From assembly GCA_907165135.1 (NCBI GenBank), contig OU015566.1, positions 13,392,001-13,456,000 on the forward strand: a stretch of 64,000 nt of DNA, read 5' to 3'. The notes under the pieces are model-generated. The model searched no databases. It had not been told where the DNA came from and saw only the letters and a list, made by a program, of their open reading frames with translations. Position numbers and translations under genes: made by a program. This document shows positions 221 to 10,066 of the stretch, piece after piece (position 1 is the first letter of the stretch; each line of letters starts with the position of its first letter). This DNA is from Oikopleura dioica (lineage: Eukaryota > Animalia > Chordata).

Positions 221-2248
221 CTAGCCTTCGTACTTTTTCTTCGTAGGGTCCAGCGAGAGACGAGATGGACGGAGAATATTCCGCTTGGGGCTAGGAGAAG
301 ACGGGTTGGAAGTAGACCTTTGGGGTTGTGACGAAGCCAGGATCAGGAGCGAAGATGGGATCAGAGATGTTGACTCCGTCGCCGAGCCAGATTTTGGAGC
401 TTCGAATAGAGGCTTTGGCGGAGCGATCGGAGAGAGAGAAGATGGAATCTTTTCGGGCGGTTTGGGCTTGCGTGACCGAGATTGTGACTCGATACCCTTA
501 CCTCCCCTAGTCACATGATCGTTCTGCTTTATTTTCGACTTGAAGTTTTTGATCAAGTGTGGCCATTCGGTCAAGTCCAGATTTTGATCATAGTCATCAA
601 GGAAAGGAACTATTTCCTCGATCGCGGCGACATGGGAACGGTGAATGAGGTCGACGGTGCTGTTTGCATCTTCGACGAGGCAGACCTGCTGGTTGGTGGA
701 TCTGAGGGTGGAGGGGCCACTCCATTTTGCATTGGAGTTTTTGGCGTCTCCGGCGAGTGGGCGTAGCTTGACAACTTGGGGTTTTAGTTTCGAAGCTTCG
801 GTGAACTCGAACTTGACGTTTCCAAGTAAATTGTTTATCGAGTAGGAAGAGATATTGCTGTTGCGCAAATAATCTCGTCCTAAGAGTGCTGGGCGGCATT
901 GTCCATCCATCACAGTTGCGGCGAGCTCAAACTGAGGGCCTTTGTCGAATCTAACCTTGCAGTAGAGGGTTCCCCTTGGAGTTTCAGCTACTCCGCTAAT
1001 ACCGGCTACATCGTGGTTTGGAGCGCTCAAATTGCGTAGCACGTTTTGGGGGATAACATGCGAAGGTAGAATTGTTGAATATGCGCCAGTATCGAATTCG
1101 ATGTTGCAGTCGAACGAATCTTGTCCTGACTCAAATGTGGCGCGTAGAAAATATCCAGGGCGGGATTCGACCTTTTCGGTCAGGTGCACTGGAATTGCAG
1201 AGAAGAGGGCATGGACATCGGCGAAATTATCGGGTTCCACGTTGTAGTGGCTTTTACGCTGCATTTGATCGGGCTTTTCGGACTTCTCGTCCTTTTTCTG
1301 CGCAGAATTCTGGTCCCGATTGTGCCAAGAGCGTTTACCCTCGCCATGTTTTCCATAACCTTGCTTCTGTTTGTTGTTGGATCCGGGTTGAGTTTTGTTG
1401 ACGTTGATGACATCTGAAGAAACGCGGTTTCGGCGACTGGTCTCGGCTTTGAGTGCGAGGTCGTTAAGCGTGAAGGTTTTGTCGATGGAGCTCAGAAGAG
1501 CGTTGTAAGTGTCAGGCTCCTGGTCGCGGAGGGCTCTGACAGCGAACATTGTTGCCCATGCTTCGTGGATATCTTCCACATTTGGCTCAGCATCGTTGTT
1601 AGCAGTTTTGAAGGTTTCGAGAAACGCGGCTTTTGCCTCAGCGAGTTTTGTTGCGAGCTCGGATGTGAAATGAGTCACGGGGCGCGATCGGTCGAAAACG
1701 ATGTCGCTGACATCGAGCATCAGTAGAAAATGCGAGATTTTTGGGCCATAGTGCTTCTTGAGAAGCCCAATGGCGGCGTCGACGTCGTCACAGGCGCGGA
1801 GATCGTTACCGATAAATCGGGCGACGTTCGGAGCTAGCTTGCTGGTAAGAGCGTTGAGGAATATTTTTTCGTCGCCGTCGCGGCGTAGATGACTGTCTTT
1901 GAATACCCTCATCGCTGTTATAAAATCCACAAACTGGCCGGGGCTATTTCCTTTGAAGGGCTGGATTGACGCGAAGCTTTTGTAGAACAAGTTGCAGATG
2001 TGCTGCTCGCGCTGGTCGTATTCCCTGTTGGAATTTTCGGCCGGTGGATTGGCGTATTTGCGTTTTCGGACCAGGTCCTTGTAGTGCAAGAATAGCTCGC
2101 GTTCTTTTTGGAGCTGTTCTTCCTTCATCGTCTGTAGTGCTTTATCAGTCGGAGCGGATTTGAGCTTCTTGTCGAGATCAGCGATGAAGTCGGCGATTTG
2201 TTCCAGGGCGCCGTCGCATCTTTCGACGGTTTCGGGGAGATTTGGCAT
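221..2248 (-). CDS. Gag-like / aspartic protease / integrase C-terminal-like polyprotein (675 aa)
   Basis: Intronless ORF inside the LTR element; helical Gag-like N-terminus; retropepsin motifs IEFDTGAYSTIL (DTG at 1085-1093) and ALLGRDYL; KWSGP...LIHRSHV resembles the GPY/F integrase CTD; no YxDD, RNase H or DDE core. Confidence 0.85.
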   Translation of the reverse strand: MPNLPETVERCDGALEQIADFIADLDKKLKSAPTDKALQTMKEEQLQKERELFLHYKDLVRKRKYANPPAENSNREYDQREQHICNLFYKSFASIQPFKGNSPGQFVDFITAMRVFKDSHLRRDGDEKIFLNALTSKLAPNVARFIGNDLRACDDVDAAIGLLKKHYGPKISHFLLMLDVSDIVFDRSRPVTHFTSELATKLAEAKAAFLETFKTANNDAEPNVEDIHEAWATMFAVRALRDQEPDTYNALLSSIDKTFTLNDLALKAETSRRNRVSSDVINVNKTQPGSNNKQKQGYGKHGEGKRSWHNRDQNSAQKKDEKSEKPDQMQRKSHYNVEPDNFADVHALFSAIPVHLTEKVESRPGYFLRATFESGQDSFDCNIEFDTGAYSTILPSHVIPQNVLRNLSAPNHDVAGISGVAETPRGTLYCKVRFDKGPQFELAATVMDGQCRPALLGRDYLRNSNISSYSINNLLGNVKFEFTEASKLKPQVVKLRPLAGDAKNSNAKWSGPSTLRSTNQQVCLVEDANSTVDLIHRSHVAAIEEIVPFLDDYDQNLDLTEWPHLIKNFKSKIKQNDHVTRGGKGIESQSRSRKPKPPEKIPSSLSPIAPPKPLFEAPKSGSATESTSLIPSSLLILASSQPQRSTSNPSSPSPKRNILRPSRLSLDPTKKKYEG

Positions 2249-3440: not shown

Positions 3441-5314
3441 TCAGTGGCCGCCGGCGTTGGAAAGCGTCAAGTTGTAAGTGACTTGGTGGCCTCTGTCCCA
3501 GGCATAGAGCAGCCCGTCGACGGGCGAGTAGTCCACCATCGTGTTCCACTCGTACTTGTTGGTGAATGGAATGTCGATGAACTTGAACGCCTCTGAACAT
3601 TTTTATTTCAATCGACTCGGCTCAGAGGGGAAATGACCTGTGTGGGTGTTGTACATGAAATTTAGGCCGGTGTATTTTTCGTCGTATTTCTTCAAAACGT
3701 ACAAAACGCCGCAGACCATGAAGGCGTTTCCCGACCACTGTTTACGCCAGTTCGTCCTGAAGGTCTTCAACACGTCCAGAGTCTGAAAATTCGAGTTCAA
3801 GATAGAGCTTCTCATAAAAGTAGTCCTTGCCAAAACGAAGAATTGCTTATTGTAAAGTACCTTTGGGTCTAATTTAGAAACGACGATGTCGAGGGAGTTT
3901 TGAAGCGTCGCATAAATCACCCAAAGTCCAGTTTCATCCGCTGCGAAATCGATGTCCGTTGATCCAGCCCACTTTTTTTAGGTTTTCAACCTGCATTTTC
4001 TTTAAGTTTAATTTTTTTATCAAAAACCGTGGCTGATAAGGCGCCATATTTCCGAAGCCGGCTTCTGGGAGAGATCTTTCTGCAGCGACTTTTCGTGTTG
4101 CGAAATCGAACCTGAAAATGATGATGAAGAAGACTGTTTTTGATGTTGTCTCACCGAATAATTGATGAAGTGTTAAATTTATTGAAATAGACGGAGCCAT
4201 CGTAGATCTGGTGCCCAGTACCTGCCCAATTGTATGGAACTGAAAACTTAATATTTAAAAGCCCCCTTTTCAGCCCTGTTTCGAGCAATATGGGAATTGC
4301 ACTGACCTGTGTAGTTTGTAAGGGGCTGGTCTTTGATGAAATCTACCAGGCGGGCGTACTCAACCACGAGCGTGTTTCTGATTCAAGCTTCAAAAGAGCA
4401 AAACTGGAAGTAAGGGATTCGAAAGAAGAAATGAATCGAATTCTCGAGTTTTCCGAAGCGTTCCTGTAAAAATGCTCCATAATGTAAATCGAGCTGGATT
4501 CCTTTCTGAAGGCGTCTCTGCCCCAGAAGCCGAACATTCGTCCCGACTTCTTGTAAGTGACTGGTTCGCCAACTTCCGTGATTTTGCCGCATTTTCCGTC
4601 TAAGCTGGGGATTTCGTCGATTTGCTCGTCGTCCATTACCACGAAAGTTTCGTCGTCCATTACGCTAAAAAATGAAATCAAGAACAAATAAAATAGAAAT
4701 CTAACCTGTAAGCAGTGTGCCTCAATTTGTTCGCCGCTTCGACCAAAACCGACTGCTTCAATTTGTAGCTCGAAAGTTCGACGACAATCGCTCTCGGAGC
4801 AGCTCGGTCTTCGCTTTTGCTTCCCACACGATTTGCTCTTTCGATATCGGATGCTTCGATTTGGTAGCCCAAGTATTCCAGCAATTCGACGATTTTTCCG
4901 GCTGTGTCTTCGTTTTCTTCCTCGGGGATTCCTGAATTTGACAATTAACACTCTTAAAATTTCCGAAATCTAATGATTCCGCCTTCCAATTGACAAAAAC
5001 TGACCTTTTAGTCGAATAAACCGCGATCTCGAGTCTTCTTTCAGCTCCCGAATGTAGCCAGTATTTGTTTTCAAATCAGCCCGCAACTTTTCGTTGCTAT
5101 TCTTTATTTCCGCAAAAGTAGACTCGATTTCTCTCGATCCCCTTTCAAGCTGAAAAAGACTCGCTCGGACACGAGTGAGGGCTTCGATCGACGTTTTCTG
5201 ACGATCGGAAAAGACCAAACTCGCCGTCGAAAACAGCAGCGGCCAAATGACGACTCCAAGGACCATCAACAAAGAGGCCGATTTCGCGGACGATTTATCT
5301 AACCCATCTTTCAT
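3441..5314 (-). CDS. Olfactomedin-domain protein with N-terminal signal/anchor, coiled coil and LINE ORF1p-like RRM (8 exons)
   Basis: Spliced OLF motifs: CGKITEVGEPVT..SGRMFGFWGRD, VPYNWAGTGHQIYDGSVYFNK, WAGSTDIDFAADETGLWVIYAT, NAFMVCGVLY, IDIPFTNKY..MVDYSPVDGLLYAWDRGHQVTY. Upstream exons join in frame through GT-AG introns 4932-5004 and 4665-4705. Confidence 0.9.
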
Positions 5315-6143: not shown

Positions 6144-7485
6144 TCAGATGTTGAGCGGCTTGTTGTAAAGCAGAACTTGGCGCTGCTTGAAGCCTTTTGC
6201 ACTCAAAGCGGAAGTGAGGTTGATCGGATCCGAGAACCCGATCGAAGTCAAAAAGGATGTGAACTCGCAGGGCTTGAACTTAATGTTTTTGTAGTTTTCC
6301 TCGATTTCGGAAGTCAGCTTCTTCCGACGCGCATAGCTTTTCCAAGGCTGAAAAGAATTTAATTTATAATTTATTACAAAAAGCGGGAATACCTGTGGCT
6401 CGAGAAGAAAGCGGCCTCCTGGCCTTAGCTGCCGAAATATTCTTCTGAAGAATCTCTTGATTCCGTTGTCGCCATTGTTCAAATGAACCCATTTGGAAAC
6501 ACTGAAAGCAATGATTGTGTCGTACTCTGGCTCCTGCCGCTCCAAATATTCGTCGCAGCTGAAGACGTAGTTCCCTAAATAAAAATCAAAAAGGAACGAA
6601 TGATTTTAGTACCGTTGATGAAATGGACGTTTTCGGGAAAGTCCTTTCCTTTCGAGTTGGAGAGGCCGGTGTTTACGAAAGGAGCTCGTAAAGGACCGTA
6701 TAATTTTGAAAAACTGGCCGGGAATTTCTTTTCTTCCGCGCAATAATGCCTAAAAATAGAAATGAATAATAAAGAAAATGCTTTCTTTTTACCGAATATT
6801 TTTCTGTGCCATTTCGATGAGCTTTTCGTCGATGTCGATTCCCACTATTTTCCGAGGCTTCAGATCCCTTAAATCAATTTTTATGCCCGATTCTAGCGCC
6901 TGAAAATGAACCTGGCGATAAGAAGCGTCAAATGACCCGAGTTGCAGCCAATGTCGAGAACGTCGAGTCCCTCCATCCATTCTTTCTTCATCAGATCGAT
7001 CCGATAGTCTGAGAATTTGTCGCTATTTCTGTAACTGAAAAACACTTTCACGAGCCTGTTAGGAGATAAAATTTGTGTACCCGTAGTACTGGATGTAGTT
7101 TCCGTGGGGAAAGGTTTGTTTCTCGCCTCTTTCACCGTTTTTCTTGCTAGACTTTTGATTCTGTTTCAGCTAGAAAGCAATTAACAAAGGCGAGTAAAAA
7201 GTAGATCACCTGTGAGCCAGATTTAGACCCTTTTCTCTGCTTCTTGGGCGCTTTTTTGCTTTCTTCATCATCGAGGCCAAGAGGATCTTTCAGATTTTCG
7301 GGTATTTTCAAATCGGTTGCTTCTGAAATCGGAAGACTGAATTCATTCTCTTCCACATCGTTGATTATTGCATCCTGACTCAAAGAATCAAGCCCTAGCG
7401 GATCGTCGACTGATCCGATCGGAAATTCTTTGTTCTCCGAATTCGAGACCTTCCTTTTTCTCGGTCGCGATTTTATCTGGCTCAT
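6144..7485 (-). CDS. MEPCE: 7SK snRNA methylphosphate capping enzyme (Bin3 family)
   Basis: VLDIGCNSGHLTLLIAR (SAM motif I), IVGIDIDEKLIEMA, YDTIIAFSVSKWVHLNNGDNGIKRFF..LRPGGRFLLEPQ, DPLGL motifs. Confidence 0.9.
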
Positions 7486-7559: not shown

Positions 7560-10066
7560 TCATTCTTCCATATTGTTTTGGTAGTAGTGGCCGGCGATCT
7601 CGGTCAACCATTCTTGCTGAATTACTGAAACTTCGCGCATGTATTTTCCTTGCGTCACTTCTGTGTACAAAACGCATTTCGGGGGCTTTTTCATGTCTGC
7701 CAGCGCGGAATCGGGGTGCAGCTTTTTGAGGGTTTTCAAATTTGAAGATCATGGGTACAGAACTCGGCAACTTTTATGGAGCTAAAAATCAAACCCGCTC
7801 CTGAAGAACGACAGCGTCTCTGACAGTCTCATAAAGCCCATCTCCCCTCAGAATCGCCGCATTCGGAAACAAACCGGCCGTTATCGCCTTCAAAACAGGA
7901 AAAACATTTTCCCTAGCTGAGGTTTCTTCGATTTTCCATCTTTTAAGAAACTTAGAAAGCTGCGTTCGAATTTGACCGACGCGGACGAGAGCTCTTTTCT
8001 TCGGTTTTCAAAGATCTGCTTTTGCAGTCAGTCATTTTCTCGAAAATCGATGCCTGTGATTCAAAAAGCGCTTGTTAGTAAATTTTCTGTCTCTTTCGCA
8101 CTCTTCGAAAGTCTCGAACGCATTCAGCATCGAAATGTGATCTCCCTCTTCGACTTGGAATCTTCTGTGCTCCCTCGAAGCTTCCTGTCTTCTCCCCGGC
8201 GGAATCTGGAAGATCGTTCTCACGCTCAGCAGAGCCACCATCGTCAGAATCTCGCGCACGCACTCGTACTCGATCGAGGCCAAAAGCATTTTCGCGAAAA
8301 AGGGATGAAGCGGCAGTTCCGCGATTCGCTCACCGATCTTTTCTGTCAACTCGCATTCTTCGTCCAAAGCTCCTTGAAATTCCGAAAGTTAGATTCAGCA
8401 GAGGCTTGGCTCAGCAGCCTGTGTAAAAACCTGACTCATAGTCTGAATGATTACTTCATGAAAGACCTTTCAGTCTCTAATTCAGGTTTTTTTGCACAGC
8501 AGGCGATTTTTACCTAAAGCGAAGAGCAGTTCCAGCGACCTGGAAAGCGCCTGAGCTGGCGGCGGCGAGGGAAAGTCGAATCTGACGACGTTGCTGATTC
8601 CCAACTGCTTCAATCGCAAAATCGTGCTCGTCAATTCCGATCGCCGCATTTCTGGAACAGTTGCTTCCATCAACTTGTCGTAGTCTTGCTGAGTGTAAAG
8701 TCGGTAGCAAGAGCCAGAGCGGACTCGACCGGCTCGACCGGCGCGTTGATTTGCGGCTGCTTGAGAAACTGGAACTGTCGTAGTTGAATCGAGCCCGTTT
8801 TTTGGGTTGTAAGCGGAAATCTTAACGAAGCCTGCGTCGATCACGTGCACGATGCCAGGAAGAGTTAACGAGGTTTCGGCGATGTTCGTAGAAACTTTTT
8901 GAAATGTCAACAACTGTTGACCACTTGAAAAATAGGGTTGAAAAAGCCAGATACTTGAGCAGTTGTTGACTCTTTCCTATAACTTTTCTGGTGTTCCTCG
9001 GCAGACTTTCAAAAACCCTCATTTGGTCTATGACCGGCAGCGATCCATAAAGCGGCAATGCCTTCATCTTCATCAGCGGAACACCAATTCCCTGCGCTTT
9101 CAAAATCACCTTTCCGACTTCGTCTCTCAAGTTGTCGCAAAGACTATCGCAGTCCTCCGCCGAAGTCACGAAAACTAAAATGTCGCCAGGCTTGTTGTCG
9201 CGGTGGATCTTCAAAACTGTTTCGAGCGATTCTTTCATGTAGTCGGGACAGGGTTTTTCCAAGTAGAATATGTCCACTGGATAAGTTCGGCCTTCCAGAT
9301 GGATAATTGTCGAGGTGTCTTGTTCTGCATTGCCGGTCAGATTGTGATTGAAGAAATCTCTGAAGAACTCTGCATCAAGCGTCGCCGAAGCAACAATAAT
9401 CCTCAAATCCGGCCTCACTTTCTGAATCTTCTTCAAAAGTCCGAGACACATGTCTGTCTGCAGGCTTCTCTCATGCGCCTCGTCGATCATGATCACCGAG
9501 TAGCGCCGCAAAAGAGGATCGGAGGTCATTTCTTGGAGCAAGACGCCGTCGGTGACGAATTTCACACGCGTCTGTTCTTCGTCTTGCTTCGAATCGAAGC
9601 GGACTGCGTAGCCGATGCTGGTTCCGATCATGGCTCCTTTCTCATCGGCGACGCGGGTTGCCAGGGTTACAGCAGCGACTCGACGAGGTTGAGTGACGCA
9701 GACTTGGTAGCCGCGGCTAGTCCAGCCTGCTTCGTGGAGATACTAGAAGTTGGATTTAGGAGAGAGTGATTTGAAAAGGATGGAAGCCGATTGCCGCCTT
9801 GGCTCGACAATTTGATAGGAGAATGCTCAAACCTGTGGAATCTGGGTTGACTTTCCGCATCCAGTTTCTCCAACCAAAACGAGCGTTTGAAAGTTCTCGA
9901 CGGCCCAAAGGATGTGATTTCTCCACTGAAAAATGGGCAGCCTCTGTCTCTGCTGCGTTAGCGACAAGTTGCTGTTCGGATTGAAAGAGGTGATTTTCTC
10001 GCCCGATCCGGCGTCAAGCAACACTGCTTCTTCGGGCGCCGACGCTCCCGGTCGCCAAACTTTCAT
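7560..10066 (-). CDS. DHX35: DEAH-box RNA helicase DHX35
   Basis: N-terminal WRPG...FNPNSNLSLTQQRQRLPIF typical of DHX35; GETGCGKSTQIPQ, DEAH, SAT, QRAGRAGR, HA2 and OB-fold segments. Confidence 0.9.
8405..8505. mobile_element. Degenerate copy of the hAT-like MITE family in a DHX35 intron
   Basis: CTTGGCTCAGCAGCCTGTGTAAAAACCTGACTCA resembles the left TIR at 48288; inverted partner TCAGGTTTTTTTGCACAG. Confidence 0.55.

Follow-up and report, generated by a model that had tools for sequence, protein, structure and literature searches.

The window analysed here, a stretch of 64,000 nucleotides (nt) from the larvacean Oikopleura dioica (contig OU015566.1, positions 13,392,001 to 13,456,000 of the forward strand), carries near its beginning a host gene of the olfactomedin type with an unusual stalk. 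The stalk, which lies between an N-terminal signal or anchor and the C-terminal olfactomedin (OLF) domain, is very probably a domesticated fragment of the first open reading frame (ORF1) of a long interspersed nuclear element (LINE). The fragment consists of a coiled coil and a non-canonical RNA recognition motif (RRM) and is devoid of the C-terminal domain (CTD) of the LINE ORF1 protein (ORF1p). A reading of the DNA letters made without database searches (the sequence-only reading) had proposed that such a retroelement module was captured by an olfactomedin, and its individual claims are considered below together with the data that bear on them.

The module is an ORF1p-type RRM

The module is identified as an ORF1p-type RRM by both profile homology and fold. 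Query sequences were single exons of the window or naturally contiguous proteins, namely open reading frames (ORFs) of paralogues and the orthologues P0163, P0162 and P0019. A profile built from the six modules found in Oikopleura matches human LINE-1 ORF1p in the PDB (2yko/2ykp, E 2e-5) over profile positions 2–86, which is the entire RRM, and the same profile finds 2w7a (E 8e-5) and 2ldy (E 6e-4). With a wider profile of 97 rows, the match to ORF1p improves to E 5.5e-9. A similarity of the six-module profile to ISWI/SNF2 ATPases (E 8e-5, partial profile coverage) was regarded as a motif coincidence; it weakens to 0.004 with the 97-row profile.

The fold was modelled on P0163 (residues 80–186), the closest contiguous orthologue, which is 73% identical to exon 2 of the window gene. 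The AlphaFold2 model, computed from the 97-row alignment, has a predicted local distance difference test (pLDDT) score of 84.8 and displays the beta-alpha-beta-beta-alpha-beta order of an RRM. In a Foldseek search of the PDB, the top 12 matches are all human LINE-1 ORF1p (E 5e-5 to 1.4e-3). VIA-align gives ORF1p Z scores of 11.5 (root-mean-square deviation 2.6 A, 98 aligned residues), 11.2 and 10.5, compared with 8.0 or less for ordinary RRMs. The structural match to the ORF1p RRM that the sequence-only reading had predicted is thereby confirmed on the P0163 model.

An exhaustive HMMER search of 1.84 billion representative proteins returned 7507 relatives at E<=1e-3, 373 of them at <=1e-10. 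The best relatives outside tunicates are proteins of 200–280 residues made of a coiled coil, the module and a short tail. A Pfam scan of 115 relatives found Transposase_22 in 17, Baculo_FP_2nd in 15 and Baculo_FP in 7. One relative, P0013 (E 1.1e-17, 243 residues), is encoded 600 nt upstream of an ORF for 1073 residues that contains Exo_endo_phos and RVT_1 domains (an apurinic-type endonuclease and a reverse transcriptase, RT). Because it adjoins an endonuclease–RT ORF2, P0013 is a genuine LINE ORF1. The environmental contig that carries both (L015:8001-12554) appears to hold a complete LINE, with P0013 as ORF1 and ORF2 600 nt downstream.

The model of the module (mb1f5c6703551) also resembles models of the baculovirus protein FP25K (Foldseek E about 1e-3). 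Together with the Baculo_FP and Baculo_FP_2nd matches in LINE ORF1-like relatives (P0035 and others), this suggests that FP25K shares the ORF1p-type RRM. No statement of a link between FP25K and the ORF1p RRM was found in a quick literature search.

Structure of the gene

The module belongs to a single gene on the minus strand (window 5314-3441), which has nine exons, eight short introns (41–86 nt), 1380 coding bases and about 459 residues. Its features, in window coordinates, are as follows.

5005..5314, minus strand: exon 1; start codon, hydrophobic segment, coiled coil and RRM strand 1 (ending in ...FIRLK and the first base of Gly)
4932..5004, minus strand: intron 1; 73 nt, GT..AG, in the RRM, after strand 1 and before the GIPE turn
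4706..4931, minus strand: exon 2; remainder of the ORF1p-type RRM (helix 1, strands 2–3, helix 2 and the start of strand 4)
4665..4705, minus strand: intron 2; 41 nt, GT..AG
4464..4664, minus strand: exon 3; last part of RRM strand 4, then an acidic linker (about 20 residues), followed by the first cysteine and the beginning of the OLF domain
4378..4463, minus strand: intron 3; 86 nt, non-canonical GA..AG, positioned by colinearity with P0163, without read coverage
4377-4307, 4239-4155, 4111-4033, 3971-3861, 3782-3638 and 3592-3441, minus strand: exons 4–9; remaining part of the OLF beta-propeller, with the stop codon

The splice dinucleotides are GT..AG in six of the eight introns. A putative intron at 4032-3972 (61 nt) would be CC..AG under the orthologue-guided model; no canonical alternative preserves the frame there, and the site is without read coverage.

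Intron 2 is cleanly excised in a marine metatranscriptome contig (X1 record 2, 95–99% alike to the window), in which position 4706 is joined to 4663/4664, with one synonymous-looking single-nucleotide polymorphism, base 4664 being substituted. A second contig of the same run (X1 record 1) verifies the OLF intron 3860-3783. Intron 1 is accepted without a read because the motif that it divides is read through in one ORF in three paralogues (L003, L004 and L005), and because the orthologues P0163 and P0162 are single uninterrupted ORFs on intronless, cDNA-like contigs of 1.65 kb (L012 and L013) that are colinear with all nine exons of the window gene and hold the anchor, coil, RRM and OLF domain in one ORF. 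The two introns that the sequence-only reading had drawn at 4932-5004 and 4665-4705 are thus correctly placed.

The N-terminus encoded by exon 1 is short and charged and leads into a hydrophobic peak of 19 residues (residues 16–34, mean Kyte-Doolittle 2.19, in a segment of about 14–35), which is predicted from the amino acids to be a signal peptide or a type II signal anchor. A helical heptad coiled coil of about 55 residues (about 42–95) comes after this segment and gives weak matches to coiled-coil Pfam families. Exon 1 contains no cysteine and is 47–48% identical to the orthologues P0162/P0163.

Pfam OLF (PF02191) is found in the downstream exons with E 3e-5 to 7e-16. The exon pieces cover OLF profile positions 1–52 (exon 3, E 3.3e-5), 58–91, 150–204 and 206–245. 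The domain is complete, as shown by the colinearity of the gene with P0163 throughout and by the orthologue P0019, which spans positions 1–246 (E 1.8e-84); exons 4–9 are 65–90% identical to P0163. There are exactly two cysteines in the window protein, one at the OLF start in exon 3 and one in exon 8, and these are the positions of the conserved OLF pair. Hydropathy, the Pfam OLF matches and the colinearity with P0163 therefore bear out the claim that anchor, coil, module, acidic linker and complete OLF domain reside in one gene.

A host domain under purifying selection

The module evolves under purifying selection. In comparisons of exon 2 with orthologues, the proportion of nonsynonymous differences (pN) is 0.21–0.22, that of synonymous differences (pS) is saturated at 0.81–0.96, and pN/pS is 0.23–0.26; the OLF exons behave alike. 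In the genome searched (64.3 Mb in 19 contigs), exon 2 alone retrieves four more copies (E 1.5e-18 to 0.3) and the profile retrieves a sixth. All six copies genome-wide are in host-type genes: an OLF domain accompanies five of them, and none adjoins an RT. Neither the Transposase_22 model nor the family profile finds any further ORF1-like sequence in the genome beyond these six. The recurrence of the module beside OLF makes the arrangement in the window more than chance, and the selection on the RRM exon, its low copy number and its host-type settings show that it is not a neutrally evolving repeat, the possibility that the sequence-only reading had set against itself.

The module is divided by introns at places specific to each paralogue. 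In the window gene, the intron comes after strand 1; in L002 (1404-1497), a GA..AG intron lies inside helix 1; in L004, an intron of 50 nt precedes the end of helix 2; and in L003 (1276-1746), L005 (1150-1845) and L011 (931-1743), the module has no intron. Such differences are consistent with genes that have long belonged to the host and whose introns have turned over. Nothing of the ORF1p CTD is present: the stretch from RRM strand 4 to the first OLF cysteine consists of some 20 acidic residues, without any other domain match.

The surroundings of the gene are described by the following rows, in window coordinates.

221-2248, minus strand: long terminal repeat (LTR) remnant; ORF of 675 codons with the signature of a retroviral-type aspartyl protease (gag-asp_proteas E 3.5e-5), separated from the OLF stop by 1.2 kb on its downstream side
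6147-6545 and 8825-9631, minus strand: ordinary host genes among the upstream neighbours; exon of a Bin3/MePCE-type methyltransferase (E 1.5e-34) and a fragment weakly matching a DEAD-box helicase

No endonuclease or RT is seen among the neighbours of the window gene. The sequence-only reading had placed the gene in a run of housekeeping genes; this description does not fully hold, as the neighbourhood is not purely housekeeping and includes the Gag-protease LTR remnant.

Distribution in tunicates

The same build (signal or anchor, coil, module and OLF domain) is found in the ascidians Clavelina lepadiformis (named noelin-3-like in RefSeq), Ciona savignyi, Ciona intestinalis (noelin-2-like) and Styela clava. 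Module and OLF are also combined in another O. dioica gene and in many marine sequences. The vertebrate noelins contain the Noelin-1 domain PF12308; in the tunicate proteins, PF02191 is the sole Pfam match. When the 120 best OLF relatives were searched with the family profile, the module was absent from the amphioxus protein and from the vertebrate noelin and OLFML2 proteins.

A reduced tree of 47 rows (21 tunicate and 26 LINE, model LG+G4, unrooted, with two thirds of the LINE rows omitted) places all 21 tunicate modules on one side of a branch with a Shimodaira–Hasegawa-like approximate likelihood ratio test (SH-aLRT) value of 83.8; of these, 19 form a clade with a value of 96. The simplest reading, which is not proven, is a single capture before the larvacean–ascidian split. 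The presence of the architecture in ascidians upholds the old domestication that the sequence-only reading had argued for.

There is also a type of paralogue that has an anchor, coil and RRM and no OLF domain. In O. dioica it is located at L004:1397-2019 on the minus strand (G000 C2, about 1165700-1166330), with a stop about 23 codons past the 50-nt intron. Orthologues of this type are proteins of 178–199 residues. On the contig L016:420-1019, a gene of this type is followed by an OSR1-like kinase gene on the same strand, in an arrangement that resembles an operon transcript.

A predicted multivalent olfactomedin protein

We propose that the hydrophobic N-terminus would take the protein into the secretory pathway, where the coiled coil would self-associate in parallel, most likely as a trimer like that of ORF1p. 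The RRMs would sit at the base of the coil, with the OLF domains suspended by the short acidic linker. The outcome would be a multivalent extracellular or surface protein that presents several OLF propellers, with the RRM probably serving as a structural or spacer module, not as a nucleic-acid binder. To our knowledge, every known OLF domain is extracellular; since a signal or type II anchor precedes them, coil and RRM should also be luminal or extracellular. We infer the extracellular location, the oligomer number, the loss of RNA binding and the LINE-to-host direction of the transfer.

When three copies of the coil and RRM of P0163 are modelled together, the score is 0.49, compared with 0.01 for the best control. 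The mark used for self-association was calibrated with two copies, not three; it is passed by 21 of 30 proteins whose solved structures are pairs of one chain (17/29 for eukaryotes, 7/16 for animals) and by 0 of 23 whose solved structures are single chains. The three-copy runs have at least 82% of their contacts in common and a partner pLDDT of at least 76, and the contacts, which involve residues 37–90, are parallel, in register and heptad-spaced. The modelling supports a parallel self-association of the coil.

Evaluation of the interpretation

Several points weigh against the domestication reading as a whole or in part. Exon 2 scores E 0.042 (14.6 bits) with Pfam Transposase_22 (PF02994), under the cut-off of 22.4, the window module having been scored by single exons. 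The paralogues L003, L004 and L005 and the ascidian orthologues have no Transposase_22 match in a Pfam scan, and PF02994 has no match in the whole genome. The homology to ORF1p/Transposase_22 that the sequence-only reading had claimed thus stands at the level of profiles searched against the PDB, and falls short at the level of single sequences, none of which reaches the Pfam cut-off. The structure and complex models are those of the orthologue P0163, not of the window protein itself. The three-copy result may reflect prior exposure of the predictor to the solved ORF1p trimer (2ykp), and it does not discriminate between dimer, trimer and tetramer.

The transcript data likewise cover the gene in part. 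Of the joining of the stalk exons to the OLF exons that the sequence-only reading had assumed, the exon 2–3 junction is present in RNA, and the exon 1–2 junction has no read across it among the RNA-derived data examined. Three RNA-seq runs labelled O. dioica (X5-X7) match the window at 90–95% only, in OLF exons only (3600-4260), and mostly partially. This level of similarity is as expected of reads from paralogues or from another, cryptic lineage within the species, and the joints 3757/4033 and 3973/4155 that they contain were discarded as evidence on this gene. Finally, L005/P0171, a divergent paralogue, falls outside the tunicate clade when all 97 rows are used for the tree; and since the tree is unrooted, the LINE-to-host direction is argued from distribution, not from the tree itself.

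The charge of the module bears on an alternative in which the captured RRM has kept the ability to bind nucleic acid or some other polyanion (extracellular RNA/DNA, sulfated glycans, the tunic or house matrix) and has been retained for this binding, beyond oligomerisation. The net charge of the RRM core averages +0.9 (standard deviation, sd, 3.1) in 21 tunicate modules and +8.4 (sd 2.5) in 76 LINE ORF1 relatives (Mann-Whitney p 1e-10). Exon 2 of the window gene has a net charge of -4, and its nearest orthologues have -4 to -5. Basic copies persist, however (L003 with +7, several ascidian or other copies with +3 to +4), the hallmark ORF1p RRM motifs are under purifying selection in larvaceans and ascidians, and it is the RRM that is conserved, not the coil alone. 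The CTD of ORF1p cooperates with the RRM in RNA binding, as established by structural work, and this domain is absent here; taken together, the loss of charge and of the CTD make RNA binding unlikely for the window copy, whose module moreover lies on the luminal or extracellular side of the signal or anchor. We consider retention for binding improbable as an explanation of the family. The more specific proposal that the ORF1p-derived stalk binds an extracellular polyanion of this kind, and hence acts as a transposon-derived receptor, appears slightly less probable still; if it were true, the OLF-less paralogue would be a free-standing version of that activity.

The remaining alternatives concern the origin of the module and the gene model. 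It is quite improbable that the module is not derived from a retrotransposon at all, being instead a host RRM that resembles ORF1p or an ancestral host domain captured by LINEs. Such an origin would agree with the failure of Pfam to call the module, with the lack of a root in the tree, and with the absence from the genome of a LINE with such an ORF1, as searched with PF02994 and the family profile. But ORF1p outranks all other RRMs by sequence and by structure (Z gap >3), the order of coil and then RRM is common to the module and ORF1p, the ORF1-like relatives number in the thousands and one is shown to lie within a LINE, and the combination of module and OLF was seen in tunicates alone, the OLF relatives examined from amphioxus and vertebrates being without the module. 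An artefact of the gene model, in which exons 1–2 would form a small gene of their own, or the decayed copy of a transposon, lying by accident in front of an OLF gene, is scarcely credible. It would explain why no read spans intron 1, and a truly stand-alone anchor, coil and RRM without OLF does exist in the L004-type paralogue. Against it, the spliced RNA-derived contig links exon 2 to exon 3, both parts are in one ORF in the orthologues on intronless contigs and in the RefSeq models of four ascidians, and in L005 and L011 the module and the OLF start share one uninterrupted ORF. We thus retain the interpretation of a host olfactomedin whose stalk was taken from a LINE ORF1.

Relation to known systems

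The tunicate module shares with LINE-1 ORF1p (type II; PDB 2ykp, 2yko, 2w7a, 2ldy) a coiled coil placed directly before a non-canonical RRM and, by prediction, the parallel association of the coil. Unlike LINE-1 ORF1p, the window protein has no CTD and no ORF2, its module contains introns, it is preceded by a signal or anchor and followed by OLF, and its charge is about 0. Its nearest LINE relatives are a group of environmental ORF1 proteins with a Baculo_FP-like tail, not mammalian L1.

Olfactomedin stalks are formed by N-terminal coiled coils in noelin and myocilin, and by a type II anchor and a collagen trimer in gliomedin. The tunicate proteins are built on the same plan, with a signal or anchor at the N-terminus, a stalk for oligomerisation and, at the C-terminus, an OLF propeller with a conserved cysteine pair, and the role of their stalk would be comparable to that of the gliomedin collagen stalk. 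They differ from other olfactomedins in the transposon origin of the stalk and in its folded RRM, and they are without PF12308 despite their RefSeq names (noelin-2/3-like).

Co-option of LINE ORF1 proteins is rare. L1TD1 of mammals is described as the only gene wholly derived from L1, and a handful of vertebrate fusion isoforms is listed (PMC4161310, PMC11014241, PMC12129022), which includes Lyosin/MYL4, L1-RFX5, NUP42-L1 and USP4-L1 (PMC12129022). A fungal co-option is represented by the EKA effectors of Blumeria (PMC4641428). In common with these cases, the tunicate gene keeps LINE ORF1 coding sequence in a host under purifying selection, and the fusions likewise splice a coil and RRM unit to host exons. 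The known co-options that we found are vertebrate or fungal only, the animal ones are intracellular, and the fusions carry ORF1 sequence as an alternative first or last exon. The tunicate ORF1 part is, in contrast, a constitutive internal stalk of a secretory-pathway protein, is split by introns, and is common to larvaceans and ascidians. No tunicate or extracellular case is mentioned in PMC12129022, and no description of the architecture emerged when the literature was searched for olfactomedin in combination with ORF1p, Transposase_22, Oikopleura or Ciona/noelin. It is therefore apparently a previously undescribed domestication of ORF1p, with a new setting, a greater age and a new use.

To the known cases the tunicates add one that is old, probably preceding the larvacean–ascidian split, that lies outside vertebrates, that provides a constitutive stalk in the secretory pathway, and in which the basic charge of an RNA chaperone has been lost. 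Since standard Pfam annotation misses the module, other cases of this sort may have gone unnoticed. For the ascidian genes, these findings correct the noelin-like annotation. For the ORF1p family, the tunicate stalk would represent a nucleic-acid-binding transposon protein put to structural use, and a natural experiment on what the ORF1p coil and RRM do without the CTD and RNA.

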